Source of the DNA: Fimbriosthenelais zetlandica
Lineage: Eukaryota
Direction of reading: 5' to 3'
Length of the DNA: 64,000 nucleotides
NCBI GenBank assembly: GCA_977030845.1
Contig: OZ365110.1
Location: 992,001 to 1,056,000, forward strand
In this document: positions 5,103 through 62,500 of the stretch, piece after piece
Layout: every line of letters starts with the position of its first letter
Position numbering within the stretch: the stretch's first letter is position 1
Position numbers and translations under genes: made by a program
Notes under the pieces: model-generated
Told to the model about the DNA's origin: nothing
The model's database searches: none
What the model saw: only the letters and a program-made list of their open reading frames with translations

Positions 5103-8100
5103 TTAAAGCATCTAAAATAAAAACATCCAAATATCTGCGCTTCAGGAAAGTGTCTGCATGAGGGGTGCGAGGTGAGAAAGATGGAGGGTGTGAACGAGTG
5201 AATGTGGGGTGAGCAAATAATGGAGGGGGTGTCCACAGTGACGGCCTAAAGGGGCAACAAGGGGCGTAATAGGCTCACATGGCTACTACATTATACAAGT
5301 TCCTCATTTCACTCTTATGACTTTAGAAAATCTCAAGATCATTATCTGGACCTATTTCCATTTTACATTTTTGGATATCATTTTCTTTGCGACCTTTCCA
5401 GTCTAAAATGACTCAAATTTCCATTCCATTCTGAATATTGCCCCGTTTTTTACTTTCCATCATGTGTTAACTTTCTCTCAGCCCAGTGTAGTAGGAACCA
5501 TGTGATTTACAAGCAGATAAATAAGTAGATTTCTGTGATAATAATAAAAGATCAGGAAGCATGGACATGTAGGCTACTGTATGAATGAGGGAGAGCGCGC
5601 TGAGGGGGCGGGGGCGGGGGAAGGGGCGGGGGAGAACAAAAGTGGCAAGTTGACTATCTGAATATGTATACATTTAACAGAAGTTAACAGGACGTCCCCA
5701 CACCACGAGCGCACCATTACAGCTTAATGAGAGATGATTTAAACTGACTTAACGTTAAAGCGATGATGTAATTATGTACAATGTATATGAATGATAGGTC
5801 AGCTGCCGAGTCCACCTCCATCCAATGTAGCGGGGTCAAGTCAGATAAAACATCCACAAAATAGGAAAAGGAATATTTCCGACACAAAAAAGAATATTTC
5901 GTGGACTGGTAGGCATTTCTTACTTCCACGTGAATTATGTTTAGTGCAAAGATGGTTAAATAGCAACTTTAGCCCCAGACAATATGCATTATTCTGATAA
6001 TTATTAATTCTCCCAAGCTTCCGATCCATGGGGCCAAAAAATGCGGTTTTAACGAATAATGCAAGATAAAAGAGAAAAGAAAATATAAAGAATAGCTCGA
6101 AATAGGCATGTATCCCCATAATAGGAGAAATAGTAATAATTTGATACCCTGCCATAGCTATAAGAATAGCAGCCACAACCCGCGTGACTGGCAGGGAAAC
6201 TGACTAGAACTCTTGACAGGGATGAAGCATGGACTCAGCTTGAAGCTAGCATTAAGTCTCACACCAGACATGGCTGAAGCCACTCACCTGTTTTACTGTA
6301 GCTTTGATGAATTCTTTCTTATGTGAGAGATCAAAATCAGGGTACTTGGCATAAACCTGAAAACAAAAATTACATTAAATGTATAATTCCAAGATCTTAC
6401 TTTTTAATTTAAAGATCACGATTCTGTGTACAAGAAGATCAATGATGGTCGCTTTAATTAGTTATAAATAAATAAATCATAAAAATAATTAAATTAAATT
6501 AAATTAATTGCACTTAAATCTCACCTGTTTGCACACGGTTTTCATGGTGACTTCCTCTAAGTTGGCGCCGTCCAAAATCTTCTTGACACTGTCTTTAATT
6601 TCATCATCCTGAGAAAGAGAGAACACAATAAGAAATATTAGAGCTTTAATTTTTAAAAATCCATCAGTAAATCAGAAATTTGTACTTAATTTAAAATAAA
6701 ATATCAATAAACATTAGAATGTTGTATAAGAGAATGACTTACCGTGGGTTCTTTCACTTTCTTTTTGCTCTTTTTTTCTTTTGGTTTCTCTTCTTCAGAG
6801 TCAGATGCGGATGATGCTGAAAAATAAAATATTACTTTATTATTTTATGCTCAGCTATGCTTAAAAATTACATATAATATGGACTCCGATGAGAGAATAT
6901 AATATTTATAAAGAATTTCAGTAATCCTCACCTTTTTTCTTCCGTGGGGTTTTCTTGGGGGCTTTTTTAGGCTCAGGCTTGGCCTTGGGCTCAGTTTTAG
7001 CCTTCTTCTTCTTCGGTTGTTCCTGGAAGAAAAGATTTAAAAACTAATGTACAAAGGAAGACAAGATTTAAAACTAATGTACAAAGGAAAACAAGATTTA
7101 AAACTTATTTACAAAGGAAAACAAGATTTAAAACTAATTTACAAAGGAAGACAAGATCAATGTACTAATGTACAAAGGAAGACAAGATTTAAAGCTAATG
7201 ACTTAGTAATCTACAAAGAATGTTTTCTCTCATTCTCGTCTCCCAGTGGACAATTTATGTTAGAGTTTTGTATAAATCATTTATAAATCTCTCACCTCCT
7301 CCTCGTCAGAATCTTCTGACTTCTTCTCTTCTGATTCCTCCTCTTCTTCTTCTTGTGATTCTTCCTCCTCTTCCTCGGACGCCTCCTCGTCGTTCTCTTC
7401 CGTCTCCTCGTTCTCTTCTTTCTTGGCTTTCTTTCCTTTCTTTGCTGTGGCTGTGGCACCTTTTGATTTTCTCTTCCCTTCTCCCTTTGATTTCCCTAAA
7501 AACATAAACAGAAAACGTTTAAATCACTTCCTATCTTCTCAGTCTATAAACCTAAACTTAAATTTAACAAACTAATTACTAATACAAATATAAACATTTT
7601 AATATTATATCTCTGACTAAGCATGGCTCTTTCTATTATGAAAAATCTACCTGCCATTGACCAAATTTAAATCTGATTTCACTTTCCAGTCCGAAGTATT
7701 TAACTTGCCCAATTAATGTTTCAATGAACACAGAATATTCACAAATTATTTCCCAACTATCGGGCAAGGGATGCTAGAGAACTACCTGCCTGCCAGAGTA
7801 ATTTGGCTAAATAAAACCTTATAAAGTCATGTATTGACTCACGTTTGCGTTTTTGAGGGACGGACTTGCCCGAGTCGACAGGTCTGATGAGGTAGTCGAG
7901 GATCCGGTTAACAATGGTCTCCTTAGATCCGCTACGTTCTAACGCTAACGTCTCACAGATAGGCTTCAACTGAGACTGGGTCATCCTGGAGACAGAGAGA
8001 AAGAGACAGATATTAAAATACAGAGGCTTCAACTGAGACTGGGTCATCCTGGAGATAGAGAGAGAGACAGACATTATAATACAGAGGCTTCAACTGAGAC

Positions 8101-14419: not shown

Positions 14420-17400
14420 ATGAATGCCATCATCTCGCTGTGTCACTTCTGTGAGCTGCACGGACCGAGTATTTTATTCTGTACCCAGGCCTTCCACACT
14501 CATGATCCTCAGCAGGTACTGGAGGCAGATTACGGGGGTCTGGATGACGGGGGGATTACGTCACTCCCTGATCAGAGAGATCTGAGATCACCTGGCAGCC
14601 TCGACACCCCCTCCACACCACAGTCTCTCTCATCATTCTCTAAAGTCTCAGACAACTGTGAGGTATGATTCCCAACTATTTAATTATGGGATATATACTC
14701 CTTTTGATTCATATACATGACCTACTCCAGTATTCAATTTGGTATCTTAAATTCTACTCAAAGTTCTGTGCGCTAATAACATTCATATAGGGTTAGATTC
14801 TATAATAATGACCAATATTAATTAATTTAATTTATCTGTATTTTTCTAGGCGTGTCAGAGTTTCCCTCTGGGTCAGCCAGGATTGATCAGTACTGATCAT
14901 GAAGCTAAAGTCAGCTATATCAGCTCCCAGCATCCTCACCACCAACAGGTGTTCTCTATGGTGAGACAGGCCTGCCTGAGGAGCCTCAGCTGTGAGGTGA
15001 GTGTACTATCACCCTCCCCCCCCACCCCCCTACACCCACCACCACCCCCACCCCATATATCACCCCTAGGCCCCACCCCCTCATCCCACTCCACAATCAG
15101 CAAAATTAATATCATAAAAACTCAGAGAGCTATTCATACAATAACTCAGAATTTTTGGGAGCCAAATTTGAGGTCAATTTCATTTGCGCGAGGTCCTATA
15201 TTTTATTATTTTATATTTATATTTTTATCACCAGGTGTGCCCTGGCCGTGAAGGACCTATATTTTTCGGTGACGATCATCGTGGTCATGTGTTCTCTCAC
15301 ACCTTCTTCGTGAAGGACGCTCAGGCTCGGGGCCTCCAGCGCTGGTACAGCATCCTGGTCGTCATGATGGATAAAATATTCCTGTTAAACTCGTGGCCAT
15401 TCCTGGTGGCGCAGACGAGGACTGTGATAGATAAACTACAAGATAAAGCCAAGACGGTGTATGACAGAGAGAACGCCAAGTGTCCACAGAGATCACATAG
15501 ACTCACCATGAGTGTGAATCCATCTAACTTCCTACAGCAGAGAGGGGGAGGAAACAAGCCAGCCAGGTGAGTGGTGGGTGGGGGGGAGGGGGGGGGGGAG
15601 GCAACAAGCCAGCCAGGTGAGTGGTGGGTGGGGGGGGGGGGGAGGTCACATAGACTCACCATGAGTGTGAATCCATCTAACTTCCTACAGCAGAGAGGAG
15701 GAGGAAACAAGCCAGCCAGGTGAGTGGTGGGTGGGGGGGGGGGGAGGTCACATAGACTCACCATGAGTGTGAATCCATCTAACTTCCTACAGCAGAGAGG
15801 AGGAGGAAACAAGCCAGCCAGGTGAGTGGTGGGGGGGGGGGGAGGGGGGGGGGGAGGCAACAAGCCAGCCAGGTGAGTGGTGGGGGGGGGGGGGTGTGGG
15901 GGGGGGGGGGGGGAGGCAACAAGCCAGCCCGGTGAGTGGTGGGGGGGGGGGGGGAGGTCACATAGACTCACCATGAGTGTGAATCCATCTAACTTCCTAC
16001 AGCAGAGAGGAGGAGGCAACAAGCCAGCCAGGTGAGTGGTGGGGGGGGGGGAGGGGGGGGGGGAGGCAACAAGCCAGCCAGGTGAGTGAGGGGGGGGGGG
16101 GGCTTGTGGAGATGGGTAGAAGAAAATTGGTTTTGACATTACGGGATCCCTGATTTCACTGAGATATTTAAGATTTTCAAGATTTTTAAGATTTCTGTTC
16201 ATTACAGGTCGCTGATAGAGCTGACAGATGATAAGATGGTTTTCTGTAAGTTACATCGTTTCTTCACGTGGATTCTCAAGGCGGGAGGGAGTCGTCTATC
16301 AGAGCGTCTACTGGAGGGACCGCCCACTGAGGACTCTATTATAGACTACGAGAAACAAGAAGGTAAAACACAGGCCTCACTAGATCTACTAAAGTAATTA
16401 TCAGCCATGAGAAGTTAAACTGACATTATAGGGTGGAGATTCCTGCCCCCAGAGTATTCCCAGTTCTGATTCTATGGAAGATTTAGATGAACAGATTCTT
16501 TCCTGGCTATATTTGATTAAAATATACAAATTTATACCTGGAGCAGATACACTGTTAAGTAGGCTACAAATTTACTAGAAAAATCATTATATGAGTAGAT
16601 CAATTTGTATCATACTTAGAGAGAAATCAAAATATATAATAAATCATTATCATACATACATGTAGATAGAAAAATGAATCTATATTATCATTGCCCTGGA
16701 TGTAAACTATATCATATCTATATCATCATTGTCTGACTATAAACTGTCTATGTCTGACTATAAACTGTCTATGTCTATGTCGGTAGAGACGGAGGAAGGG
16801 TTCGTTAAGATCTACAGCGTGAAGGATGTGATGGAGGAACGCGTGGAGGAGGGAGATGAGACGACACCTACCGGCCTGGAGGACGGGGGTCCACAGTTTA
16901 CATCTATACGACATCTACTGCGGGTAAGGCGTTAAAGGGGCTCTATCACTGATCAAAACTGAGCATTAAAGTGGCTCTATCACTGATCAAAACTGAGCAT
17001 TAAAGTGGCTCTATCACTGATCAAAACTGAGCATTAAAGCGGCTCTATCACTGATCAAAACTGAGCATTAAAGTGGCTCTATCACTGATCAAAACTGAGC
17101 ATTAAAGTGGCTCTATCACTGATCAATTAACAGTCTGAGTGTTGTGCATTAAAGTGATATCTTGAGGTAAATTTATAATTCATTTTTCTTTGCCTATAGA
17201 TCCTGGGTTACATGGAGTTTAATAAACTAACTCATCACGTGATCATTGGTAACCAGGTGATTATCCGCGGTAACGACCGAGGTCTGGTCCGCTCCCTCAT
17301 CGACAATCTCAAGGTCAGTGCTTGTCATAGACGGCGCTACATGAAGGTCTTATACAATTAAAGTCTCTTTCTTGAGATGACAGAAAGTGAGCTGACTGGA

Positions 17401-19362
17401 CAATAAACAATTATATAGTTAAGGAAATATGATATATTTAAACCTTGTTGTATTGTTACCTTGTTAAAGGTGTTGTTACCTTATTGTTGCAGGTGTTGTT
17501 ACCGCGTGGTTGCTGTCGAGCCATCTATTACAGCTCTCAGTACATTGACTCATGGCGGTGTAATTTTCTCGGCATGCCTCTCAACACGGAGCTGCCTAAA
17601 CATGCCTCTCTGTACGTGACTCTGGACATGAGGGACCCGCGGGATGACGCGGGGCGGGGACCGCCGGATGACGCGGGGCGGGACACGCGGGACCACGCGG
17701 GGCGGGACCACACCACCTCTATAGAGGACGGGGAGGACCCCGGCATGGAGGGAGCGGAGGCCAGCAAGTTTGATCCTGATAAAGACCCGCTACAGTTCTA
17801 CAGCTTCAGTGTCAACTCACCCATGTGTATGCCTGTCAAAGGTGGGTCTCTAACTCACTATAGTTCACTGATTTAGTGTCAACTCACCCATGTGTATGCC
17901 TGTTAAAGGTGAGTCTCTAACTCACTATAGTTCACTGATTTAGTGTCAACTCACCCATGTGTATGCCTGTTAAAGGTAAGTCTCTAACTCACTATAGTTC
18001 ACTGATTTAGTGTCAACTCACCCATGTGTATGCCTGTTAAAGGTAAGTCTCTAACTCACTATAGTTCACTGATTTAGTGTCAACTCACCCATGTGTATGC
18101 CTGTCAAAGGTGGGTCTCTAACTCACTATAGTTCACTGATTTAGTGTCAACTCACCCATGTGTATGCCTGTCAAAGGTGGGTCTCTAACTCACTATAGTT
18201 CACTGATTTAGTGTCAACTCACCCATGTGTATGCCTGTCAAAGGTGGGTCTCTAACTCACTATAGTTCACTGATTTAGTGTCAACTCACCCATGTGTATG
18301 CCTGTTAAAGGTAAGTCTCTAACTCACTATAGTTCACTGATTTAGTGTCAACTCACCCATGTGTATGCCTGTCAAAGGTGGGTCTCTAACTCACTATAGT
18401 TCACTGATTTAGTGTCAACTCACCCATGTGTATGCCTGTCAAAGGTGGGTCTCCACTACAGTCGGTTCACTCTAAGTTGATCAGAAACCACCATACATTT
18501 GAACTGTGGTTTCGGATCAACTTCGATTTGAACAGACATTTTGAACACTATAGTTCACTGATTTAGTGAACCGTTTAGTTTTCCTTTAGTGATTGCTGGA
18601 AATCGCAGTGTTATTGCTTAATAACTTGTCTGTGAAACTAAAAAAACTGAAGGACATATCTACTGTAATACAAGAGAGAACACCTATCTATTCCTCTTGC
18701 TTGTAAATTTTCAGTGCTAAGGCTTAGATAGGTTAACTGTACTGTTAAATGACAAGCATTGGTTGTGACTAGAAATATACTATCGCTCAGCATCGCTTGG
18801 GCAGATCGCCTCTGTGTGGGCCCGACATAACACCTATCACTTTCACTTTCAGCCCCCGCTGTTCTCTGCTCCATCGAGCAGTTCCTCCTGAACGAGCAGC
18901 TCACAGACAGCGTGGTGGACCAGTGTCTCATCTCTCTAAAGGAGGAGTGGATGAAGTGAGTATTCATTATTATATAACAATAAAATGGTAGAAATAAACT
19001 GTTTAAGTTTTAAACTCCTTGACTTTTCTGGTCAATGTGACAAGACAATTTTAACATCAAACGACTTCCACAAACCCCTACAGTCCTCCTTTCATTGATC
19101 TTCATTACATTTCATTTTATCACGGTAATCAAGAATCATCTACCTATCTACTTGTTTTATGTTTTTCAGTAAAGTGAAGGTGTTGTTTAAGTTCACTAAG
19201 GCTGGCGGCAGCAGATCAGATGAGGACACACGGCGTCTACTACAGGTGGTAGAGGCTAACGAGGAGGACAAGGCCGTGCTCAAATTCTGGATGACGGGAC
19301 TGAGTGTACAATACAGAAACCACATGCTCAGCTCAGCTATACACCAAGCTGTCAACAGCTGA
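14420..19362 (+). CDS. FLCN: Folliculin, 9 coding exons, about 590 aa
   Basis: Exons 14420-14662, 14850-14996, 15235-15566, 16208-16362, 16787-16923, 17200-17313, 17493-17841, 18853-18955, 19170-19362. Diagnostic [87 protein letters not shown]. Confidence 0.96.
15490..16095 (+). repeat. Array of FLCN exon 3 donor copies separated by G-runs
   Basis: CAAGCCAGCCAG|GTGAGT at 15567 (functional), 15617, 15720, 15822, 15873, 15932, 16032, 16082; three copies carry about 75 nt of exon. Confidence 0.93.
16933..17125. repeat. 34-bp array, about 6 copies, of a TTAA-anchored transposon-end motif
   Basis: ttaaag(t/c/g)ggctctatcactgatcaaaactgagca; same motif as the MITE terminus at 63346-63369 and the solo end at 41722-41741. 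Confidence 0.85.
17810..18455 (+). repeat. 67-bp array containing the FLCN exon 7 donor, 10 copies
   Basis: Donors at 17842 + n x 67 up to 18445; variants GTGGGT, GTGAGT, GTAAGT. Confidence 0.96.
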
Positions 19363-19500
19363 TAACAAGCTGTCAACAGCTGACACCAGGCTGTCAACAG
19401 CTGATACAGCCATACACCAAGCTGCCAACAGCTGTCAACAGCTTCCACAAGGCTGTCAACAGCTAACAACAAGCTGTCAACACCTGATGGCAGCTGACAG
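19340..19500 (+). repeat. Degenerate repeat spanning the FLCN stop codon
   Basis: caagctgtcaacagctga-like units from the last codons into the 3' UTR. Confidence 0.75.
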
Positions 19501-21344: not shown

Positions 21345-21509
21345 ATTCCCAGATTTTTCCCGATTTACAAAATTTGAATGAATGCCCGGACTTTTCCCGG
21401 CCTAGGTCCAGGAGACACATTGACAAATTCCCGGACTTTTCCGAGTTTTAAACAAATTATAATGAATTCCTGGACTTTCCCGACCTGTGGGACTATGCGG
21501 ACACCCTGT
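21345..21509. mobile_element. Truncated DNA-transposon end (CAGGG terminus, hAT-like) just after the caspase stop
   Basis: Terminus tgcggacaccctg (CAGGGTGTCCGCA reversed) with four subterminal ttcccggacttttcc repeats; no partner end found. Confidence 0.5.
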
Positions 21510-21523: not shown

Positions 21524-23849
21524 TTATCGTTTACGGAACTGTAGCGTTTTGAGTAGCATGGAGGAGACGTAGGGCACGACGCGTCGACCCTTGTAGAAGG
21601 CGTCTGCGACTTTAGCTTTATATAGAGGGTCGTGAGCCACCTTGTCTGTGACCAGCGTCAGCAGGTCCTGAAGATCCATGGCGAACCCGTAATTCATGAT
21701 CACTTCATGTAAGGCGATGACGAACCATGATCCAACGTCACCAGTCTTAGCTGCTGAACGGCGGAACGAGTAGTAACCTGAAATTAAATCATGATGAAAA
21801 TATGGAAATATAGTGATTTACTTCTAAATTTGAGAAAACTGTACCGGTACAGTTAATATATTTATTCAAGCACAAGTTCAGTAAGTGGTGCACCAGGCCA
21901 GGGACACAAAGAACAATAGACATGATTCTATGTCTATGAAATAACTCATATTAAGGGGAACGTAATGGAATGAATGAATGAATGAATGAATGAATGAATG
22001 AATGAATGATTGAATGAATGAATGAATGAATAATGAATGGTGATTTAACGCCATGCCAGCTACTAAGGCTATATTCATGGCGAGAACTAACGAAATAGAA
22101 CCATTAATGTTGAATCATTAATCAATGTGGAAAGGGAAATGGCTTATGAGAGACTAATATGGTCCGGAACATGGTAAGGTAGTTAGCATTAAGACTCGAG
22201 AGGCAGGATTAAAGGAGGAGGATTAAGCCGAATTAGCTCGACTAATGGAGGAGTTACCATGGTAACAATGATCAAGGTCATTAAAGGTCAGAACAGTGGA
22301 CGATACAATGAGTACTACTAGTGGTCTTAATTATATCAGTTATAGCTCAATATGATGACATGTAAAGGTAGAAGACAAATAACGGAGCAGAGAAAAACAA
22401 AAATCTGTAAGGCAAAAGAAAATATTTCCAGGTTCTGGTCACTTCAAATTGCTAAGAGAAATTTCAGCACTTTTTGCTGCACAAATTTTGTAGCTAGAGT
22501 GAGGCCAGAGAAGATGACTGACCGGGCGGGGCGGAGTAAGCTATCAGGAAGTCCTTTTTGAGCGGTACGTCAGTGACGCGGCACGGTCCGGGGTCAGAAT
22601 GAGGCTTCTGTACGACGTAATTCTCACCGTCTGTCGTCATCACTTCATCCAGCATCTGACCACGACAAGCCTACAGTAGGGGAAGAGGATAGGTTATAAT
22701 TAGAATTACATGTATTTATGCCATCCCTCGTATTAATTGTGCTTGGTTCCTGATATCAGGAAGGTGGGGAATATTTATTCAACGGTATAGTGGATTTTCC
22801 GGGCCCTATATGATTATAAGCTTACAAACATGTAAGCCCTAAATCGGATTAAAATGTAGGCTCTATATAAGCTTACCAAAATGTAGGCGCAATATGAGCT
22901 TACCTACATGTAGGCCCTTTATAGGCTTACCAACATGTAAGCCCTATATATATATAAGCTTACCAACATGTAGGCCCAATATAGGCCTACATATATAGGC
23001 CTAGGCCTTATATAATACCTGAACCTGAAGCCTACCTGTATGAAGAATAGTTTGGGTTTTCCGGCCATGGTGGGACATTCACTGTCTGACAGCTCGTCCA
23101 TCAACCATTTAGTGAAGATGACTTCATCCTTAGCGTAGATGACGTCAGTCATGACGTCACGCTCCTTGTCAGAGTGACGTGAATGACGTGAGTGACGTGG
23201 GGTGTAGACGCGCTGTTTCTGGTCCAGCAGTTCCTGATCTCCGTGAGTGGAGAAGGCAAACGCCACACAACTGTCATCACTGTGGTCCTCAGACTTATCT
23301 ATAATAATAAATCTATATTTTAATATCTAAACAAACTTTTTTATCTGCCATAAAATCTGATTTCAAAACAGCTTTCCTACCCAATTTAGCTCCCTATAGA
23401 ATACGGGAATAAATACTCCACGGGTAGGAGAGAATGGAGGACACTATTATTTGAACCTGATAGCAACATCTGACATAAAATAAAACATATATCAGATATT
23501 AAATAAAGCGTAGAATGACATTAAGGACTCACATTTAAGCACTGTTTCCCAGATAAAGTTGGCTGTCTTGTCGACATGCGACTCCACTGTGAACCCAAGG
23601 TGGTTGAAAGCCTTGTAATAATACGTGAGGTCATTCTCTGATCCCTTCCTCTCCTTTAACTGCGTCCGTTCATCAAAATGTTTATTAACGAAGATGAAGG
23701 CCTTGCCGACCTTCTTTGACATGTCGTACTCGTGGGTTACTGTGTCTGAGGGCTGGACAGACAGGCTGAACATGTGATCAGTGACGTCATGGAGGGCGCT
23801 ACCCACAGACGGGGGACCACAGTCAGGAGTATCCTCCCCAGACAGTCTC
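21524..23849 (-). CDS. Caspase, effector (caspase-3/7-like), 5' end unresolved
   Basis: Exons 23533-23849, 23036-23298, 22523-22670, 21524-21777 join in phase. They give KAFIFVN..F, RKGSENDL, catalytic STHG, GKPKLFFIQACRG, DFLIAYSAPPGYYSFRR, GSWFV and SMLLKTLQF. An upstream exon with a donor at 25418-25423 exists, but its ATG frame (25487, phase 1) does not match the phase-2 acceptor. Confidence 0.9.
21967..22085. mobile_element. (GAAT)n microsatellite plus short inverted repeat, possible HINE/Helentron-like end
   Basis: (gaat)n followed by tttaaCGCCATgccagctactaaggctatattcATGGCG. The resemblance to mollusc microsatellite-anchored non-autonomous elements is from memory and unverified. Confidence 0.35.
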
Positions 23850-29125: not shown

Positions 29126-34231
<5,106 letters not shown>

Positions 34232-37303: not shown

Positions 37304-37570
37304 ATCAGAGATTAGGCGAGCTTTACTCGCCTAGATCAGAGATTAGGTGAGCTTTACTCGCGTAGATCAGAGATTAGGCGAGCTTTACTCGCCTAGATCA
37401 GAGATTAGGTGACCTGTACTCGCCTAGATCAGAGATTAGGCGAGCTTTACTCGCCTAGATCAGAGATTAGGTGACCTGTACTCGCCCAGATCAGAGATTA
37501 GGCGAGCTTTACTCGCCCAGATCAGAGATTAGGCGAGCTTTACTCGCCCAGATCAGAGATTAGGTGACCT
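37292..37570 (+). repeat. 31-bp palindromic repeat, about 9 copies, spanning the paralogue A stop codon
   Basis: actcgccTAGatcagagattaggcgagcttt; ctcgccta/taggcgag inverted pair. Confidence 0.93.
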
Positions 37571-43590: not shown

Positions 43591-46500
43591 TCACACCTTT
43601 TGTCGCGACTTTTTGGTGGGTATATCTTTGCCTTTATATTTAAAGTAATCCTCGCCGATGTCTATAGTGTTACCGTTGTCAAACTTGCCGGTCCTCATGT
43701 CAGGCGTCATGGTTGACATGATCTTCCACTCTACCTGGCAGGTAATGATGATATGACTGCCCACCTGGCCTTCAGGTACGTGGGTGTGGAAGAACTTGGC
43801 GCTGTCCATGTATCCACGGCGGGCCAGGAACTTGTGGAGTTTGAGGTGAGTGGGGGAGTACATCACCAGGTGGGTGGGTAACGTAGACCGGTTTTTAGGG
43901 TAACGTTTAGCCATCCACTTTACAGGGTCCTGGAAAAACTGATCCGCTTCATCAACATAGTCAGCCTCACCGGCGAGGTTAGGTTCACACGTCAAAAACT
44001 CCATACTGACGTTACGGTGAAGATAGCTGAAAATAAACACAGTAACATTAAACTCCATACTGACGTTACGGTGAAGATAACTGAAAATAAACACAGTAAC
44101 ATTAAACTCCATACTGACGTTACGATGAAGATAACTGAAAATAAACACAGTCACATTAAACTCCATACTGACGTTACGATGAAGATAGCTGAAAATAAAT
44201 ACAGTCACATTAAACTCCATACTGACGTTACGGTGAAGATAGCTGAAAATAAATACAGTAATGTTAAACTCCATACTGACGTTACGGTGAAGATAGCTGA
44301 AAATAAATACAGTAATGTTAAACTCCATACTGACGTTACGGTGAAGATAGCTGAAAATAAACACAGTAATGTTAAACTCCATACTGACGTTACGGTGAAG
44401 ATAACTGAAAATAAATACAGTCACATTAAACTCCATACTGACGTTACGGTGAAGATAGCTGAAAATAAACACAGTAACGTTAAACTCCATACTGACGTTA
44501 CGGTGAAGATAGCTGAAAATAAACACAGTCACATTAAACTCCATACTGACGTTACGGTGAAGATAGCTGAAAATAAACACAGTAACATTAAACTCCATAC
44601 TGACGTTACGGTGAAGATAGCTGAAAATAAACACAGTAATGTTAAACTCCATACTGACGTTACGGTGAAGATAGCTGAAAATAAATACAGTAACGTTAAA
44701 CTCCATACTGACGTTACGGTGAAGGTAACTGAAAATAAATACAGTAACGTTAAACTCCATACTGACGTTACGGTGAAGGTAACTGAAAATAAACACAGTA
44801 ACGTTAAACTCCATACTGACGTTACGGTGAAGATAGCTGAAAATAAATACAGTAACGTTAAACTCCATACTGACGTTACGGTGAAGATAGCTGAAAATAA
44901 ACACAGTAACATTAAACTCCATACTGACGTTACGGTGAAGATAGCTGAAAATAAACACAGTAACATTAAACTCCATGCTGACGTTACGGTGAAGATAGCT
45001 GAAAATAAACACAGTAACATTAAACTCCATACTGACGTTACGGTGAAGATAGCTGAAAATAAATACATAAAATTAGAGGAGTTTAGGTATTTTAAGTGTT
45101 AATATTTTCAACTTTTTAATATCTATTTTAAAAGCCAGTCCATGAAGAAGACAGAAATCTGCCGAAATCAACACAAAATAGAACCAGTTTCTAGTGTAGA
45201 ATTCTGGTGTCCAATCAATTATAATTTGTTTAAATATTTTTTATATAATTTTACCTGTAGTAGGGCGTGGCGTGGCAGGGCGTTAGGAACAAGACGTTCA
45301 TCAGTCGTACATCTGTTTTGTATGTGTCGTCGTGGAGTCGTTTCATCACCTCTATACTGCCGCGCTGGTGGATCAGACTCGTGTACATGGCGAGAGGCAG
45401 GTTAGTAACGATCAGTGTTACCATCACAAACCAACGTCTGTAACAATAAAACAAGATAAAACAGGTAACCATGGCGAGAGGCAGGTTAGTAACGATCAGC
45501 GTTACCATCACAAACCAACGTCTGTAACAATAAAACATGATAAAACAGGTAACCATGGCGAGAGGCAGGTTAGTAACGATCAGTGTTACTATCACAAACC
45601 AACGTCTGTAACAATAAAACATGATAAAACAGGTAACCATGGCGAGAGGCAGGTTAGTAACGATCAGTGTTACCATGACAAACCAACGTCTGTAACAGTA
45701 AAACATCATAAAACAAGATAGAAAAAGGTAACCATGGCGAGAGGCAGGTTAGTAACGATCAACGTTACCATGACAAACCAACGTCTGTAACAATAAAACA
45801 TGATAAAACAGGTAACCATGGCGAGAGGCAGGTTAGTAACGATCAACGTTACTATCACAAACCAACGTCTGTAACAATAAAACATGATAAAACAGGTAAC
45901 CATGGCGAGAGGCTGGTTAGTAACGATCAACGTTACTATCACAAACCAACGTCTGTAACAATAAAACATGATAAAACAGGTAACCATGGCGAGAGGCAGG
46001 TTAGTAACGATCAACGTTACTATCACAAACCAACGTCTGTAACAATAAAACATGATAAAACAGGTAACCATGGCGAGCGGCAGGTTAGTAACGATCAACG
46101 TTACTATCACAAACCAACGTCTGTAACATAAGAGTATGAAGGGGGAAGTTATTATAGTAAGACAGGGGATAGGGAGAAACTTATTATTATAGCGCCACCA
46201 CTGAACTGTACTATGTCCCACCTAGTGTCAATACAGAGGGAGAGAGGGGGAGACTCTGGGAGAAACTTGTAGAGAAGGGGAGAGTGAGAAACTTATTACA
46301 GAAAGAGAGTGGGAGAGGGAGGAACTTATTAGAGAGAGAGGGAGGGAGAGGGCAACAGAACCGACCAAGGATTGAGATGATGGTCGCCCCTAGAGAGATA
46401 ATGCCCCGTGTGATGCAATATGATCGACAACAAAATAACAGATAAAGAATAAAGTGAATTGTACTGACCGAGCAGACCGGTTAGTGGTCGGTGTTTGCTG

Positions 46501-49500
46501 CTGGTTGACCGGTGAATCTCGCCCACTGACCGGTGAATCGTTGACCGGTGAATCGTTGACCGGTGAATCATTGACCAGTACCTCGTCGTGACAGACAGTA
46601 TACAGGTACTGACCACAGACGTGCATACAGAGCGGGAGGACGGGGAACAGGAACCGGAACTCCTTATGTTCTAATAAACTGAAAAAAAAACATGACTTAT
46701 TAACACGAAACATCGCATGTAAATCAGGCCCGTCAAAGATAAACAACTTCCAAAAGAAGGCTGTCTAGTGCTCCGTCTTCTGATTTATTGAAGGACCTCA
46801 TGATGACCTAATAAGGTGCACTGGGATTTAAGCTTTTAAGATTTAAGAGTACAAAGTTTGGGTTTCTGTAACAAAGGCATTTTATTGACACTATCTTAAC
46901 TTAATTTTTCTATAATCCATAAGGCATAGAACCAACATCCAAGTCGTATTGCCGCAAGAATTGTAGGGTATTGTGTCTGCAAATCCCTCTCGGGGCATAC
47001 ACCCACTAATCCAACATCTCAGTCAGTTCTATAGATCTATAAATGTTAAATATTTACACCTACCTGTATATGAAGACGGTCCAGGCTATGAGCCCCAGTA
47101 TGACTCTATGTGTGTAGGGGGGTGGTGGTGGTGTGTGTGTGTGTGGGGGGGGGGGGGGTATTATATATATTATATATTCCACCTACGTATATATATGAAG
47201 ACGGTCCAGGCTATGAGCCCCAGTATGACTCTATGTGTGTAGGGGGGTGGGGGGGGTTGTCGGGGGGGGGGGGGGGGGGGGTGTATTATATATATTATAT
47301 ATTCCACCTACCTGTATATAAAGACGGTCCAGGCTATGAGCCCCAGTATGACTCTATGTGTGTAGGAGGGGTGGGGGGGGTTGTCGGGGGGGGGGGGGTA
47401 TTATATATTATATATTCCACCTACCTGTAGATAAAGACGGTCCAGGCTATGAGCCCCAGTATGACTCTATGTGTGTAGGAGGGTGGGGGTGGTGGGGGGT
47501 GGGGGGGGGGGTGTATTATATATATTATATATTCCACCTACCTGTATATAAAGACGGTCCAGGCTATGAGCCCCAGTATGACTCTGTGAGACCCGTTCCT
47601 CGCACCCAGTATAAAGGGGAATAGATGAGTCCCCAGTATAACAGCCAGCCCCTGACTGAGGTACCAGTACCAGGGATGACTGCCATAAAACGCGCCGATA
47701 TTAGATAAAACGTTCAGCTCCAGGAAATTATAATGTACGTTCACCCAACGACCGTAACAAAGCTTATCAACGAGGGACGAGAAGCCCAGTACCATCACCC
47801 TACAAAAAACATCACAAAATATAAATAATCAACGAGGGAGGAGAAGCCGAGCACCATCACCCTGTAAAAAAAATATAAATTTTATATATGTTTTACTTAC
47901 AAACATTCATTTAAGTTTTTAAACTGATGGGTATCTAGTATTTTATAGACAGGATCCCATCATTCCATCAAAACCAAATTGCCTCATGTCTCCTAATGAG
48001 TTTAAAAAAAAATTTAGGATGATTATCTAGACCTAAATCTATTTAAACTATCTACAATTAAGCTCAAAAATGAACTATACGAAACTATTGAAACTAAGAC
48101 AGTAATATGGTCCAATCTAATTCCCTGATGTTCCTTTACTGGGACGTTTCACAATATTTCCCTGATGTTGTAGGATAGCTGGTAACCTTGACTATTTAAT
48201 ATAATATAATAAATGAGTGACACTCACCCCACACCCCCGTACAGCCGCACGTTAGACCAGACGTTGTGACGTTGTCTCCAGACGTGCCATAAACATAGAG
48301 GTGACCACAAGATGGCGGCCGTGGGGCGGACGACGACGGCCAGGGCGACGAGGGCGACGTACCGACCACTCCACCTCCTGATACAGAGAAAAATAGATAC
48401 ATATTATACATATATAACGACGGCCAGGGCGACGAGGGCGACGTACCGACCACTCCACCTCCTGATACAGAGAAAAATAGATACATATTATACATATATA
48501 ACGACGGCCAGGGCGACGAGGGCGACGTACCGACCACTCCACCTCCTGATACAGAGAAAAATAGATACATATTATACATATATAACGACGGCCAGGGCGA
48601 CGAGGGCGACGTACCGACCACTCCACCTCCTGATACAGAGAAAAATAGATACATATTATACATATATAACGACGGCCAGGGCGACGAGGGCGACGTACCG
48701 ACCACTCCACCTCCTGATACAGAGAAAAATAGATACATATTATACATATATAACGACGGCCAGGGCGACGAGGGCGACGTACCGACCACTCCACCTCCTG
48801 ATACAGAGAAAAATAGATACATATTATACATATATAACGACGGCCAGGGCGACGAGGGCGACGTACCGACCACTCCACCGCCTGATACAGAGAAAAATAG
48901 ATACATATTATACATATATAACGACGGCCAGGGCGACGAGGGCGACGTACCGACCACTCCACCTCCTGATACAGAGAAAAATAGATACATATTATACATA
49001 TATAACGACGGCCAGGGCGACGAGGGCGACGTACCGACCACTCCACCTCCTGATACAGAGACAAATAGATACATATTATACATATATAACGACGGCCAGG
49101 GCGACGAGGGCGACGTACCGACCACTCCACCTCCTGATACAGAGAAAAATAGATACATATTATACATATATAACGACGGCCAGGGCGACGAGGGCGACGT
49201 ACCGACCACTCCACCGCCTGATACAGAGAAAAATAGATACATATTATACATATATAACGACGGCCAGGGCGACGAGGGCGACGTACCGACCACTCCACCT
49301 CCTGATACAGAGAAAAATAGATACATATTATACATATATAACGACGGCCAGGGCCACGAGGGCGACGTACCGACCACTCCACCTCCTGATACAGAGACAA
49401 ATAGATACATATTATACATATATAACGACGGCCAGGGCCACGAGGGCGACGTACCGACCACTCCACCTCCTGATACAGAGAAAAATAGATACATATTATA

Positions 49501-52500
49501 CAATATAACGACGGCCAGGGCGACGAGGGCGACGTACCGACCACTCCACCTCCTGATACAGAGACAAATAGATACATATTATACAATATAACGACGGCCA
49601 GGGCGACGAGGGCGACGTACCGACCACTCCACCTCCTGATACAGAGAAAAATAGATACATATTATACATATATAACGACGGCCAGGGCGACGAGGGCGAC
49701 GTACCGACCACTCCACCTCCTGATACAGAGAAAAATAGATACATATTATACATATATAACGACGGCCAGGGCCACGAGGGCGACGTACCGACCACTCCAC
49801 CTCCTGATACAGAGAAAAATAGATACATATTATACATATATAACGACGGCCAGGGCCACGAGGGCGACGTACCGACCACTCCACCTCCTGATACAGAGAA
49901 AAATAGATACATATTATACATATATAACGACGGCCAGGGCGACGAGGGCGACGTACCGACCACTCCACCTCCTGATACAGAGAAAAATAGATACATATTA
50001 TACATATATAACGACGGCCAGGGCGACGAGGGCGACGTACCGACCACTCCACCTCCTGATACAGAGAAAAATAGATACATATTATACATATATAACGACG
50101 GCCAGGGCGACGAGGGCGACGTACCGACCACTCCACCTCCTGATACAGAGACAAATAGATACATATTATACAATATAACGACGGCCAGGGCGACGAGGGC
50201 GACGTACCGACCACTCCACCTCCTGATACAGAGAAAAATAGATACATATTATACATATATAACGACGGCCAGGGCGACGAGGGCGACGTACCGACCACTC
50301 CACCTCCTGATACAGAGAAAAATAGATACATATTATACATATATAACGACGGCCAGGGCCACGAGGGCGACGTACCGACCACTCCACCTCCTGATACAGA
50401 GACAAATAGATACATATTATACATATATAACGACGGCCAGGGCGACGAGGGCGACGTACCGACCACTCCACCTCCTGATACAGAGAAAAATAGATACATA
50501 TTATACATATATAACGACGGCCAGGGCGACGAGGGCGACGTACCGACCACTCCACCTCCTGATACAGAGAAAAATAGATACATATTATACATATATAACG
50601 ACGGCCAGGGCGACGAGGGCGACGTACCGACCACTCCACCTCCTGATACAGAGACAAATAGATACATATTATACATATATAACGACGGCCAGGGCCACGA
50701 GGGCGACGTACCGACCACTCCACCTCCTGATACAGAGAAAAATAGATACATATTATACATATATAACGACGGCCAGGGCGACGAGGGCGACGTACCGACC
50801 ACTCCACCTCCTGATACAGAGAAAAATAGATACATATTATACATATATAACGACGGCCAGGGCGACGAGGGCGACGTACCGACCACTCCACCTCCTGATA
50901 CAGAGAAAAATAGATACATATTATACATATATAACGACGGCCAGGGCGACGAGGGCGACGTACCGACCACTCCACCTCCTGATACAGAGAAAAATAGATA
51001 CATATTATACATATATAACGACGGCCAGGGCGACGAGGGCGACGTACCGACCACTCCACCTCCTGATACAGAGAAAAATAGATACATATTATACATATAT
51101 AACGACGGCCAGGGCGACGAGGGCGACGTACCGACCACTCCACCTCCTGATACAGAGACAAATAGATACATATTATACATATATAACGACGGCCAGGGCC
51201 ACGAGGGCGACGTACCGACCACTCCACCTCCTGATACAGAGAAAAATAGATACATATTATACATATATAACGACGGCCAGGGCGACGAGGGCGACGTACC
51301 GACCACTCCACCTCCTGATACAGAGAAAAATAGATACATATTATACATATATAACGACGGCCAGGGCGACGAGGGCGACGTACCGACCACTCCACCTCCT
51401 GATACAGAGAAAAATAGATACATATTATACATATATAACGACGGCCAGGGCGACGAGGGCGACGTACCGACCACTCCACCTCCTGATACAGAGAAAAATA
51501 GATACATATTATACATATATAACGACGGCCAGGGCGACGAGGGCGACGTACCGACCACTCCACCTCCTGATACAGAGAAAAATAGATACATATTATACAT
51601 ATATAACGACGGCCAGGGCGACGAGGGCGACGTACCGACCACTCCACCTCCTGATACAGAGAAAAATAGATACATATTATACATATATAACGACGGCCAG
51701 GGCGACGAGGGCGACGTACCGACCACTCCACCTCCTGATACAGAGAAAAATAGATACATATTATACATATATAACGACGGCCAGGGCGACGAGGGCGACG
51801 TACCGACCACTCCACCTCCTGATACCTCTAGATACATATTACATATTATAAAACGAGTTGAGTAGTCTTGAGTAAAAACATTCCTCATTCTTTCGCTATC
51901 TCTTTCTATACAGGGGTAGAGAAATAATTTTTTAGTCCACTGGTCAGGACCAGTAGGGGTAAAAATTCTACTGGTCCGCCTATCAGAAGCAACTGGCCAC
52001 AATATATGACCCTAGTTTCTTTAATATTACACCTTTTTGACATCATTCATATTTACACACAGCATGCAAAAATATAAAATATATTGTCTGAAATTTGTCA
52101 TTACTGTTTCACACAAAAAAAAATGAAACCTAACCCCCGACCACAAGCCTTATAATGGAATAGAGCAGATTGTTTGGCTACTGGCGTACTGTTAATTACT
52201 ATCCCGACATTATCACATGCTGGACATCGGGCTAGTAAGGTTATTTTTTTACAAGACCAAAACAAATTATTACTGGTCCTTGTCCTCGGACCAGTGGATT
52301 TCTCTACCCCTGCTATATCTTGGATAATATTGACCAGGTGCGCCCTTTTCGGACCCAAACGTTCACAATCTTTCTCTAGATACAATTTATAGAATAACTA
52401 GTTACTAGTAATACCCAAGCCCGAGGGGAGAACAGACGACTGTATTCAAAACCATGAACATTTGTATTGATTTCATATCTGCCAGAAAAACTGGTTTTAA

Positions 52501-54529
52501 AGTCGTCGTTTCCCATCGATTTGGGCAGGAACAGGACAATCCACTGAGAATGGAATGGAAGCCTAATAATATTTGAAGCCGACAGAAATATCAGATATGA
52601 AATGAAGATCTTACGCCTCAATTAATTTGGTATAATCTATGTTTTTCTAGGACTAAATAATTAAATATACTTCTGACCTATGAGTACCGGGCCAGGGGTA
52701 GTAGTATAAAGCTATAGTCGTGAGCGCCGTCTCCGTGCTGTTGGTTAACGTCCTGGTCGCCGCGTAGAATGTGAACCATGACGTCATCTGACAGAATAAC
52801 GTCCATAACGCCACACGCTGGTTATGTAACCTCCATGAAAACTTAAACAAGTAGAAATCAGCGGCGGCGGCGAGGACGGCCTGGAGAACGCGTGGTAACT
52901 TAATCTGAAACATAGAATATAAACATAATGAGAACTGAAAAATCAGAAAAAAAAGAGAAAATTATGAAAAATTGATGCACACTGACTAATAAACGATATA
53001 ATGAATATTGAAGGAAGTTTTTGGTTTATCTAGGTTTGGTGCCAACAAAAGATTTTAATCTAAATTCCCTGATTGTTCCCTGATATATTTTGTTGTGATT
53101 TTGTCTCAATTTTGACAGATTTTACAATACCAGTTACTAATTCTGCAGGAACTGATTTCCTGCAGTGTCTTTCTGAACTTCCTCACTCGGCCAAACTGCT
53201 ATCTCTGAATAAAGAGCGTACCAGTAAGATCCTGTAGTCGAGGTGAAGCAGGTGTAGAAGTTTATACAGACCCGCGAAGACGGAAGGGTAGACGTAGCTT
53301 CTGATACCGTGTTTCCACTCCCACGTCAGGTGACCATACCTACAACCAGTCAGTCATAAAGAGGGGTCGTGTTAGTGAGAGTTTATCAATGTATTAAAAG
53401 GTAATAATAAATTGGAAATTTTTTAAATTGAACTGATAACCTTTCAGAAGTCATAATTCCTTATGAGACAAATATAATACAATATCAAAAATATAAATGA
53501 AATAACAAATATAACAGTATATTCAGTGCATTATCAACTTTACACCTCGCATAACAGCCATGTTATTCCTGGTACAATTTCTACTATCGGTATTTCATGT
53601 TAAAATATATTGACTAATGTGGTCGCCTCGCATAAAGGCCAGAAACACTTTAGTTTTAGCTATGACACCTACCCGTACGCCATCTGGTGAGCGACCTCCA
53701 GTGACTGCCAGTACTCGTCAGGCACGAAGCTCGTCTGAATGAGCAGAGCATTTAGAACACGGAACGCGAGGAGACCCAGAAATAAAGTCCGCTCAGAGGC
53801 GAGGAGCAGGCGCAGAATGGCCGGACCAGACTGAAAAATAACATAGATGAGAAATAATGTACGCTCAGAGGCGAGGAGTAGGCGCAGAATGGCCGGACCA
53901 GACTGAAAAATAATAGATAAAGATGAGAAATAAAGTACGCTCAGAGGCGAGGAGGAGGCGCAGAATGGCCGGACCAGACTGAAAAATAATAGATAAAGAT
54001 GAGAAATAAAGTACGCTCAGAGGCGAGGAGGAGGCGCAGAATGGCCGGACCAGACTGAAAAATAATATTACTTTTTGAATGATCCAACCGTAACAATTGA
54101 CTGTGTTTTAACTCTTTTAAAGATTTGGAAGAATTTTCTGACAATTAAATTTCCAGTAAATCAATAATTTTGGGAAAACATCTTACAGTATAATCAACTG
54201 GTGAGATTTTATTAGACCAGATATATTAGGCCTATATTTAATTATTTTAGGCCTATATTAAATGAAAATAGATTAGAACTCAATTCAAGCATACATTTAT
54301 ACCAACACCCTCCCCCTATTAGGTAAAGGGGGGGGGGGGGGGGGGGGGGCTGGCTACATCAGTACTGACAAATATTTACCGTGATTTTGTCCATGCTGGG
54401 TTCCGCCTCCTCCTGACTGTCCCCCTCCTCCTCTGTCGACCTCCCCCGCCCCTGTAAGATCCCCATGTGTCGCCTCCGCCGTATGGTGGCAGCACTCTTA
54501 CTCTCCTTCACCGCTGACAGCTGAGACAT
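43591..54529 (-). CDS. PIGB: GPI mannosyltransferase 3, 9 coding exons, about 629 aa
   Basis: Exons 54380-54529, 53673-53830, 53222-53339, 52678-52904, 48228-48377, 47542-47799, 46469-46678, 45255-45437, 43591-44026, in phase. [82 protein letters not shown] possible extra in-frame first exon 54951-54974 encodes MSDAEAVK. Confidence 0.95.
43997..45066 (-). repeat. 54-bp array containing the PIGB last-exon acceptor, 20 copies
   Basis: tttattttcag|CTATCTTCACCGTAACGTCAGTATGGAGTTT; acceptors at 44027 + n x 54 up to 45053. Confidence 0.97.
45387..46127 (-). repeat. 84-bp array containing the PIGB exon 8 acceptor, 9 copies
   Basis: ttattgttacag|ACGTTGGTTTGTGATGGTAAC...GCCATG; one 95-bp unit. Confidence 0.95.
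47058..47590 (-). repeat. Array of 5 PIGB exon 6 donor copies separated by G/C-runs
   Basis: AGAGTCATACTGGGGCTCATAGCCTGGACCGTCTTTATATACAG|GTAGGT with exon end at 47542 (functional), 47425, 47312, about 47187, 47064. Confidence 0.92.
48334..51826 (-). repeat. 84-bp array containing the PIGB exon 5 acceptor, about 42 copies
   Basis: tttttctctgtatcag|GAGGTGGAGTGGTCGGTACGTCGCCCTCGTCGCCCTGGCCGTCGT. First acceptor 48378, last 51819; the distance 3441 equals 41 units with three 83-bp variants. Confidence 0.97.
51911..52312. mobile_element. MITE, 402 bp, perfect 15-bp terminal inverted repeats
   Basis: CAGGGGTAGAGAAAT at 51911 and ATTTCTCTACCCCTG ending 52312; subterminal ggaccagt/actggtcc motifs; CTATA on both flanks. 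Confidence 0.8.
53782..54066 (-). repeat. 72/76-bp array containing the PIGB exon 2 acceptor, 4 copies
   Basis: tatttttcag|TCTGGTCCGGCCATTCTGCGC at 53830 (functional), 53902, 53978, 54054. Confidence 0.93.
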
Positions 54530-59586: not shown

Positions 59587-62500
59587 ATGCCGGAGAACGC
59601 GTGTACGCGTGCATTACGCCCGTCTAACTTCCTCCTCCACCATCACCATCCTATACTCTTCGTCACCTGTCAGGTAAAAACCTTTATAAATTATTGTAAA
59701 TCTTTGTTTTTACCAATAATGGCGCATCACTTGTACATGGCACATGGATCATGACTGGGGGAAGTCCAATACCCCGCTCAGAGAACTACTAGAACATGAA
59801 CAAATCAATTTATCATTTTACTAAGTTTAAAATGCCCCGAGGTTTTTGAGGGAATTCAATATAACTTTACAACATTATTATAATATATTTGTCTTATTAT
59901 GAGGAGAACATGGCAGTAGGGAACTCCTAGATCCAATCATTCTTTTCTTTTCCAATAATCTAATGACATTCACAAACCTGCAAGCCTATACCAAAGACCC
60001 AGATCTAAGACTTAATGTATTTACTGATTCATTGATATTCATGTCTCATACAGTCAAACATTAGAGTAAACTGTATTATAACTGTGTTAATACAGTAAAC
60101 CCTGGTATAATGGTATAATCTAGGTAAACCCTGGTATAATCTAGGTAACCCACAACGTCTGGACTCCCACTCACAGGCTTAGACGTAGAGAAAGCTCATG
60201 GGAATATTATAGTTCCTTCTTAAAAATTAAAAAAATTAAATGGGTCTCGCTTAGACCCAAAGCAGTCTACTTTTCACAGAAACCTTTTTAATATTACTTT
60301 CATAGAGACCATTCCTTTAAAGGGCAAAATTAATTTTTAAATTTAAAGTTTTAATAATGCCGTACTGAGGTTACTTGAGAGACACACCCTAAACCTGCCC
60401 CCCAGACCCAGTAAGTCAAGGTAAACACAGCGCTCGCCCCCCGACCCCCCGACCCGGGGCTTGTAGAATCATGTCAGGGAGGTTTAGCTTCTGGGGCGGT
60501 GGCGGGTGTGAGTCAATACGCGCGTTATGTTCTATATTCCTAATAATCCTACCTTATACTTATATTACCCTCTCATGTCCCTATACCCCGTACATACCCC
60601 CCTATATCTATACACACAACACCCTCTCATCCCCCCTATACCACCCTCTTCTACACACATTCTATATGTTCTCATTTTCACGCTCCAGTGACCATACATA
60701 AGATATTAGTTTTAGTTTCAGGGGTTCCTTAAACAGGTAAGCAAGCCTGGGAGCTCCAAACTCCACGAATTATAAACATCATTAGGCCCTATTGACCATT
60801 CTTAGATCTTACAATAAAAATAATTTATCCAAAGAGTTTCTTAAAGTGAGATTTAGTTTGAAACACTACTGTGCTGAAGGTAATTAATGTGTCTCAATGA
60901 CAAATATGTACCAGTGTAGGACTTAATTTAAGTGATATAGTCGCTTTAATGACATGTTTCTATGTTACAGTGGGGCTGGCCACGTCTACTCTACGTCATC
61001 TACCGTACCGTTATCGCAGCCTACTTCATGGTGATATAGTCGCTTTAATAACCCATGTTTCTATGTTACAGTGGGGGTGGCCACGTTTGCTGTACGTGAT
61101 ATAGTCGCTTTAATGACCTGTTATATGTTACAGTGGGGCTGGCCACGCTTGCTGTACGTGATATAGTCGCTTTAATGACTCATGTTATATGATACAGTGG
61201 GGCTGGCCGCGTCTACTCTACGTCATCTACCGTACCGTTATCGCAGCCTACTTCACCACGTGGATCATCCTGTCTGGTACCATCAGTCCTCACCCCGTCA
61301 TCTCACAGAGGATTAAATGGTTCATCTACCTCACAAACTGGACGTACTTCCTACTGACGGCTAACTGTATCATACTGGCTGCTACAGCATCATACCGGTA
61401 CCTGACAGACCGGCGGGCAGTCAGCTACCCAGGTTAGACATTCATTATCATTCATTAACATTCATACTGACTGTTAACTATCATATTGGCTATACCAGGT
61501 CAGTGAACTTACAGTCCAGCTCAAGGGTTGATTATGCTCCTTAATAATGTCAAGGCGAAGCCGAGAGGTTATTAACATTGTTGTCAGTAAATATCAAACC
61601 CCATTCATTGATATTAAGCACAAATTAATAATCCTGGCGGGAATCATATATATGGCATGTATTGCAGAGATTATAATATCTCCTAGAATCGTACTTAAGA
61701 TATCACAGCTGTAGGGGGACTTTTTCAAGGCCTTCCTCGTTCCATTTAACATTTTAATTAAGATATGACGAATGTAAGGTCCTTGATTCATTATATGATA
61801 CATATATAATGCCCTTGTTTCATTATATGTCCTTGTTTCAGATAACTCTAATGAGGAGTCAGACTTGCCGTGGTACCTCAAGGTACAGTGGGTCATCTAT
61901 AACGTGGCCTCGGCCGGCTCGCTGGCTGTCAGTGTGGGCTACTGGGGCCTGCTATGGCGACGTGAGTAGACCTTATAAATCCACTCTTATAATACTCTAA
62001 ATGTAGTGTACCCCCAACATCTGACCAAAACCGACCTCCCCCTTAAACTGACAATGTCTGTCTTATCCTAGTTTCCCTTCTATTCCTAAATTAACTCTGA
62101 CGCTCCCCAACAAGACTCATGCCATCTCTATCTCATCTAAATTCGGGTAATATATAATATATCAAACAATCGCTTATTACTTTAAATGATCCCAACTCAT
62201 CTAAATTCCAAGAAACCAAGGTAGGCCTATGTCCGACCATTTGTTGAAGTTGCAAATAATGAGACATTTTTAATAATTAAACATTATAATAATTTAACTA
62301 TTATTATTATTTTGCAGCTGGGGTTGACGTGAACGCTATCGGTATGAACACACACGCCATCAACTCCTTCTACGTGCTGGCAGACCTCTTTATCATGGCC
62401 ATGCCTCTCCGCCTCCTCCACTTCTGGTTCCCTCTCCTGTATGGTCTTCTCTACATCATATTCACCCTCATCTACCAGGCCGCGGGGGGCACGGACCCCG

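Follow-up and report, generated by a model that had tools for sequence, protein, structure and literature searches.

Minisatellite-like tandem duplications of exon-intron boundaries have been described in amphioxus, where they are known as mirages (PMC3087553, PMC3902484). The first example came from Adh3 (Canestro et al. 2002, as cited in PMC3087553); similar boundary repeats occur in the amphioxus TnC and PGBD5 genes (PMC3902484). In the amphioxus globin genes BflGb6 and BflGb9 the repeated units measure about 150-160 bp, are 81-100% identical and are present in 3 versus 6 copies in two haplotypes; reverse transcription PCR showed that splicing is regular, and the generating mechanism was called unclear (PMC3087553). 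The authors who described mirages proposed them as a source of new introns. Literature searches turned up no genome-wide survey of mirages and no case outside cephalochordates. The present analysis concerns tandem arrays that straddle exon-intron junctions in seven neighbouring genes of Fimbriosthenelais zetlandica, within a stretch of 64,000 nt from the forward strand of contig OZ365110.1 that contains no N (hereafter the window).

The genes, rebuilt for this analysis, are DEK, caspase, PLGRKT and PIGB on the minus strand and FLCN, IQANK1 and rost on the plus strand, with 90 junctions together. Each junction was represented by a 24-mer (12 nt of exon and 12 nt of intron) that was sought, with at most 4 mismatches, in the 6 kb on either side. 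Extra copies were found at 17 of the 90 junctions (18.9%), in agreement with the figure of about 17 that had been put forward in an earlier reading made from the letters of the window (the sequence-only reading). PIGB has six affected junctions, DEK four, IQANK1 three, FLCN two, and caspase and rost one each; PLGRKT has none. Without exception, the 135 extra copies are confined to the intron next to the junction, with acceptor copies upstream of the junction and donor copies downstream of it, and each retains its AG or GT. Copy numbers range from 2 to 42, as had been claimed; the units measure 40 to about 199 bp, against about 20 to about 200 bp in the sequence-only reading. A weaker 23-bp junction case at 17453-17513 falls outside the 17. 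When analysed with Tandem Repeats Finder (TRF), the junction arrays consist of head-to-tail repeats with periods of 40-154 bp and matches of 74-99%, while three of the 17 cases are two-copy duplications that TRF missed. The exon contributes 13-94 nt to the units. Arrays picked out in the sequence-only reading were recovered in their places, including 84 bp x41.6, 67 bp x9.6, 54 bp x20 and 20 bp x44.

The gene models draw on Pfam matches, on alignments with PDB entries (FLCN and caspase exons against human or other solved proteins) and on tblastn, with which the PIGB exons were mapped using a full-length PIGB relative (P0018). Exon borders were set by scripted pairing of GT donors with AG acceptors such that the frame stayed consistent. 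Pfam supports FLCN, caspase, DEK (SAP and DEK_C), ankyrin repeats, Rost, PLGRKT (DUF2368) and CaKB. The spliced models of FLCN (589 aa), IQANK1 (592 aa) and PIGB (629 aa) are single open reading frames (ORFs) with a terminal stop only, and the closest database matches to the FLCN, PIGB and rost exons reach only 51-81% identity. Scans with Rfam and for tRNAs gave no matches.

In their anatomy, the arrays of the window closely resemble mirages. More specifically, the repeats are of minisatellite size and head-to-tail, the unit includes an exon edge together with its splice site, and both border types are hit. In amphioxus, as here, minisatellite-like units lie across the exon-intron boundary at the 5' or 3' border, measure from tens to about 160 bp, are 81-100% identical and mostly carry an AG or GT in each copy. 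The differences are of density and of evidence. Mirages are known from a handful of cephalochordate genes with 2-6 copies, whereas about 19% of the junctions in seven neighbouring genes are affected here, with up to 42 copies, and the excess over chance and the dichotomy of unit length have been measured here. Amphioxus, for its part, provided evidence that splicing is normal and that copy number is polymorphic; the present arrays were read in one haplotype. The arrays of the window are therefore best assigned to a kind that is already known and named, the mirage-type minisatellites, far denser here and probably in a second phylum; the view that they lack a known precedent at junctions does not stand (PMC3087553, PMC3902484). 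Overall, it is very probable that they are real, young, locus-specific tandem arrays that arose by duplication across coding borders.

Mobile elements were considered as a source of the units and rejected. An all-against-all comparison of 62 array units returned a single related pair, both members of which come from the same array, so that related copies at many sites, as expected of a transposon or Introner family, were not found. The mutual unrelatedness of the units agrees with the sequence-only reading, which had proposed a locally acting process and no transposon family. Several units are derived from or nested in others: the 43-bp units of IQANK1 derive from a 71-bp unit by internal deletion, and sub-arrays of 20 bp and 15 bp lie inside larger ones. 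Nesting and derivation of this kind suggest that unequal exchange is still under way.

A further feature of these introns is the presence of long runs of G (of C on the opposite strand). They lie just inside the introns beside donors (15590-16100, 26578-26616, 32500-32542 and 47150-47580), and some of them were duplicated together with the junction units.

The repeat load of the window is high. The 126 TRF rows merge into 78 arrays that occupy 17,642 bp (27.6% of the window), with per-array identities of 70-100% by TRF and 99% in the largest array, and 49.7% of raw (uncollapsed) intron 24-mers are repeated. The junction arrays might therefore reflect no special association at all, but chance contact in a minisatellite-rich genome with short introns, or an assembly artefact. 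With 78 arrays in 64 kb, arrays are indeed everywhere, collapsed introns are so short that a long unit covers a junction with 13-60% chance, and the result comes from a single window. To allow for a window of which a quarter consists of repeats, arrays were collapsed to one unit for the null model, and a founder of the observed unit length was placed uniformly in the collapsed genes. Six variants were run, with a minimum overlap of 6, 10 or 15 nt and with exon-internal placements allowed or not. Among 27 non-exonic genic arrays, 14-15 span a junction against 2.7-5.7 expected, a 2.6-5.1-fold excess (P 2e-5 to 3e-11 across the variants). Repeated 24-mers tell the same story, amounting to 18.9% of those centred on junctions, 5.2% in collapsed introns (a 3.6-fold difference) and 5.8% in exon interiors (P 4e-6). 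As a caveat to these figures, copies inside one array are not independent. The junction arrays are statistically non-random in this window, and the enrichment check suggested by the sequence-only reading, run here within the window, comes out in its favour: TRF arrays are commoner at junctions than uniform placement predicts. The variant structure inside arrays and the presence of similar arrays in independent assemblies argue against an artefact. Chance contact or artefact is thus a highly improbable explanation.

The independent assemblies are ENA contigs of related organisms that carry FLCN loci (L004-L008). Junction arrays are present in FLCN of two of these organisms (three contigs: L004, L005 and L006), at junctions other than those affected in the window. 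In L004, FLCN exon 2 is present in its entirety as six tandem copies (L004:4513-5422), separated by 17-nt spacers in which a donor start is fused to an acceptor end and which are too short to splice as introns; the same locus has a two-copy duplication of FLCN exon 6. L005 and L006, haplotig-like contigs of one relative, both carry a two-copy 78-bp duplication that includes the end of exon 2 and GTGAGT. No junction arrays were found in the FLCN loci of L007 and L008. The proteins of L004 and L006 are 93% identical in FLCN exon 2. The occurrence of arrays at different junctions in related genomes indicates rapid turnover and not conservation.

The following course of events would account for the arrays. 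A founder would arise by local tandem duplication of a 40-150-bp segment straddling a coding border, usually a junction and sometimes a stop codon, and would then be amplified and kept uniform via unequal exchange or replication slippage. When a junction is duplicated, one copy would stay on the exon remainder while all others fall in the intron, so that the gene survives. Correct mRNA would come from the border copy, presumably as the only copy with full exon context beside it, and most use of the other copies (decoys) would lead to a frameshift or premature stop, with the transcripts probably cleared by nonsense-mediated decay (NMD). The duplication and exchange steps, the choice of copy and the role of NMD are what we infer from the structure of the arrays. 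The sequence-only reading had emphasised a constant geometry, in which the functional acceptor is always the last copy and the functional donor always the first. All of the extra copies are indeed on the intron side, but the rule is no discovery: it follows from the geometry of duplication, in which only the copy still joined to the exon remainder can yield the original mRNA. The ORF check on the decoys, given below, agrees with this. The sequence-only reading had also put forward strict exon definition as a possible reason why splicing would ignore the decoys.

The decoys are nearly perfect splice sites, as had been claimed: none of the 135 has lost its GT or AG, and in FLCN certain decoy donors (GTAAGT, GTGAGT) outscore the real GTGGGT. 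Classical proximity rules from duplicated-site experiments disfavour the distal site, yet it is at this distal position that the ORF-restoring copy lies. It is conceivable that the spare sites are kept because they are useful, whether in recruiting U1 or U2AF, as splicing buffers or regulators, or in providing alternative in-frame insertions. The last-exon unit of PIGB keeps the frame and has no stop, and the full retention of GT and AG compares with roughly 3-5 variant events expected at those four columns if variation is even. This conservation signal is weak and biased by the way copies were picked; it is suggestive, and selection on the decoy GT and AG is not claimed. Further, the arrays turn over between related genomes, their very high identity fits youth or homogenisation, and in simulated use of 128 decoys from 15 arrays 104 (81%) would destroy the ORF by a frameshift or an in-frame premature stop. 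A useful role for the decoys is accordingly quite improbable.

Several points weigh against the reading of the arrays as products of duplication across coding borders that are spliced at the border copy. The excess at coding borders (2.6-5.1-fold), real on top of survivorship, comes from a single 64-kb window and from gene models built in this analysis. The border copy would be the spliced copy on the strength of ORF integrity, and use of 24 of the 128 decoys gives an in-frame, stop-free insertion; 19 of these 24 belong to the PIGB last-exon array, in which the in-frame, stop-free decoys leave the functional copy unsettled. Long-unit arrays also occur inside introns, off junctions, at the L006 and L008 loci, so that the dichotomy of unit length seen in the window is not universal. 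Finally, duplications of the end of the coding sequence (CDS) are present at 4 of about 8 stop codons in the window (FLCN, IQANK1, CaKB-like gene A and PLGRKT). The terminal copy in PLGRKT had been noticed in the sequence-only reading and is confirmed as a diverged CDS-end copy in the 3' untranslated region (UTR).

Because stop codons are invisible to the spliceosome, the bias may concern coding borders generally and not splice sites. The stop-codon arrays hint that what matters is the border between coding and non-coding sequence, as under a selection filter acting on exon-prone duplication, although the numbers are small. Under such an explanation, duplication would be favoured in coding DNA generally (for example through more G+C or complexity), purifying selection would remove the exon-internal duplications and those crossing a border would survive. 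One rule would then cover both junction and stop-codon arrays, the substantial exon share of the spanning units would be expected, and the exon-internal arrays that survive do have short units, mostly divisible by 3 (15, 18 and 24 bp). However, there is no direct sign of a higher duplication rate in exons, long in-frame coding duplications were not seen in the window, and the density of short-unit arrays is about equal in exons, introns and intergenic DNA. A general preference for coding DNA combined with a filter is, on these grounds, somewhat unlikely.

Unit length bears on another explanation, that exon borders are true mutational hotspots at which a chromatin-, transcription- or break-repair-linked process duplicates 40-150 bp at exon edges. 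The median unit is 67 bp in spanning arrays versus 21 bp in the 53 others (P 4.5e-8), only two of these 53 have units longer than 34 bp, and in annotated genes every array with a unit of at least 40 bp spans a junction. The excess, moreover, persists in the null that already lacks exon-internal placements, and two-copy, presumably young, duplications also lie on junctions. A splice-linked process of this kind would not see the four CDS ends that carry similar duplications, and the long-unit arrays off junctions in related loci also speak against it. Nor is there any bias between acceptors and donors (11 versus 6 affected junctions, P 0.28) or, among the window junctions, any difference in splice-site strength linked to arrays, and palindromes in the units are not general. 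As a possible variant, breaks could occur in a nucleosome-poor T-rich tract beside a positioned exon nucleosome. That exon borders are hotspots had been proposed in the sequence-only reading; the excess is borne out for this window, and hotspots as its cause can be put forward only tentatively. Equally tentative is the wider suggestion that in this lineage, probably annelid, tandem duplication of 40-150 bp truly concentrates on coding borders and at any given time affects about a fifth of junctions. If this were so, there would be a steady supply of spare splice sites, introns would be lengthened from about 200 nt to several kb, raw material would be available for new exons and for the sliding or gain of introns, and the spliceosome would be faced with up to 42 identical sites, of which it must choose the distal, least-favoured one.

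Two specific triggers were considered in addition to these. Hairpins or palindromes were rejected as a general trigger, with a significant inverted repeat in 10% of units versus 3% of controls. An origin by rolling-circle copying of a circular RNA or back-spliced product was dropped; it would require the ancestral intron to have a GT directly behind the end of the unit, and the FLCN 67-bp array has none.

FLCN intron 3 (15567-16207, 641 nt) falls between codons equivalent to human R239 and S240, and copies of the donor junction make up about 84% of it. None of four related loci has an intron at this position: L004-L006 read through it, and L007 and L008 have theirs near codons 193-208. Human FLCN is not known to have an intron there either. 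FLCN intron 3 may be a recently gained or shifted intron. In the model of Rogers, introns are gained via tandem duplication of an exon segment containing AGGT (Hellsten et al. 2011, PMC3265369; potato RdRp, PMC4974935). As here, local tandem duplication adds splice sites to a gene; in that model, however, the duplication takes place within an exon and the two copies provide the donor and the acceptor of a new intron, while the unit in the window already holds a working junction and extra copies only lengthen an existing intron. Gain by this route was not supported for FLCN intron 3, whose start and end are unlike the start of exon 4 or the end of exon 3.

Other described systems share single features with the arrays. 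Short intragenic tandem duplications that survive when splicing or NMD hides them are known as internal gene duplication (Gao and Lynch 2009, cited in PMC3087553 and PMC2809761); they are mostly two-copy and scattered over genomes, unlike the dozens of copies concentrated on junctions here. Human intronic variable number tandem repeats (spl-TRs; PMC10078293) are likewise near-exon tandem repeats that could sway the choice of splice site, but as a rule their units do not duplicate the junction. Clusters of tandem or mutually exclusive exons also consist of tandem gene pieces carrying splice sites, comparable to the six copies of exon 2 in L004. No such cluster was found in the window, where units hold one junction and part of an exon and so cannot serve as alternative exons.

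New splice sites and introns have long been proposed to come from tandem duplication, but natural cases are rare, and many young events lie side by side here. Arrays with up to 42 perfect acceptors or 10 donors amount to natural experiments in splice-site competition. If the pattern holds genome-wide, changes of introns and exon borders, and the choice among identical sites, would become testable, and mirages, so far a curiosity of cephalochordates, would be extended to a second phylum. Annotation of such genomes calls for caution, as exons will be misplaced by gene predictors.

The arrays and duplications are listed in Table 1.

Table 1. Border arrays, duplications and one nested intronic array in the window. 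Positions are window coordinates; the predicted real site is that of the copy adjoining the exon remainder.
Feature	Positions	Strand	Unit	Copies	Predicted real site	Remarks
DEK exon 2 acceptor array	10434..11400	-	40/53 bp	21 acceptors	first exon base 10453 (10436 under alternative acceptor)	last copy adjoins exon
DEK exon 2 donor array	9908..10319	-	48 bp (13 nt exon end + intron start)	9 donors	last exon base 10307	first copy adjoins exon
DEK exon 4 donor duplication	9340..9440	-	65 bp	2 donors (9419, 9354)		
DEK exon 5 acceptor copies	7961..9190	-	61 bp	5 acceptors	7985	
DEK 20-bp array	8224-9107		20 bp	44		purely intronic, nested between the 61-bp acceptor copies
FLCN exon 3 donor array	15495..16102	+	102/50 bp	8 donors	15566	unit has about 72 nt of exon end, then GTGAGT and G-run
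FLCN exon 7 donor array	17808..18453	+	67 bp (32-34 nt exon end + intron start)	10 donors	17841 (GTGGGT)	several decoys are GTAAGT or GTGAGT
Caspase acceptor array	23756..24516	-	139-199 bp (about 94 nt exon start + intron end)	5 acceptors	23849	nested 15-bp sub-repeat
IQANK1 exon 3 donor array	30299..30530	+	71-bp junction unit and three 43-bp units		30337	43-bp units are the 71-bp unit minus the exon part
IQANK1 exon 5 acceptor array	31110..31241	+	47 bp	3 acceptors	31217	
IQANK1 exon 11 acceptor	33087..33225	+			33207	diverged second copy 109 nt upstream
PIGB exon 2 acceptor array	53778..54067	-	76 bp (53 nt exon start)	4 acceptors	53830	
PIGB exon 5 acceptor array	48333..51825	-	84 bp (about 45 nt exon start + 39 nt intron end)	42 acceptors	48377	99% identity; 3.5 kb of a 4.3-kb intron
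PIGB exon 6 acceptor	47780..47875	-			47799	diverged second copy 62 nt upstream
PIGB exon 6 donor array	47038..47585	-	113-125 bp (about 44-50 nt exon end)	4 donors	47542	
PIGB exon 8 acceptor array	45386..46128	-	84 bp (52 nt exon start)	9 acceptors	45437	
PIGB last-exon acceptor array	43996..45075	-	54 bp (31 nt exon start + 23 nt intron end)	20 acceptors	44026	unit in frame, stop-free
rost acceptor array	60960..61223	+	62-101-bp spacing	4 acceptors	61198	
FLCN stop-codon array	19334..19499	+				spans stop 19360-19362; related CDS-end class
IQANK1 stop-codon array	34194..34356	+	41 bp	4		spans stop 34229-34231
CaKB-like gene A array	37295..37564	+	31 bp	8.7		begins 6 nt before stop 37301-37303
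PLGRKT CDS end	26540..26660	-				diverged copy in 3' UTR behind C-run

The sequence-only reading needs correction for some arrays near junctions. Five end 2-11 nt from a junction and contain no exon sequence (16932-17126, 7025-7200, 16730-16776, 9708-9757 and 30777-30808), and the 20-bp array of DEK is purely intronic. Intergenic DNA at window positions 1-6000 has 14 arrays with short units of 16-28 bp, among them 19 bp x38 and 23 bp x33, and no long-unit arrays.

Two paralogous CaKB-like genes, with the fold of a BK-channel beta subunit (Pfam E 4e-13), occupy window positions 36000-37303 and 39467-40468. The second is an intronless ORF of 334 aa, for which exact look-up and a word-based protein search found no homologue. 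An ORF at 54940-55278 on the plus strand has a weak match to Cu2_monoox_C (E 2.8e-5), suggesting that an unannotated gene for a monooxygenase-like protein lies between PIGB and rost; directly downstream of it, a 179 bp x2 array (55635-55983) is the sole long-unit array of the window that has no known exon border. Elsewhere, the predicted protein P0002 (1494 aa, from a 54-kb ENA contig) gave weak matches to the PIGB exon query in 25 stretches; it consists of about 25 near-identical 56-aa repeats and looks like translation through a tandem array in another genome.

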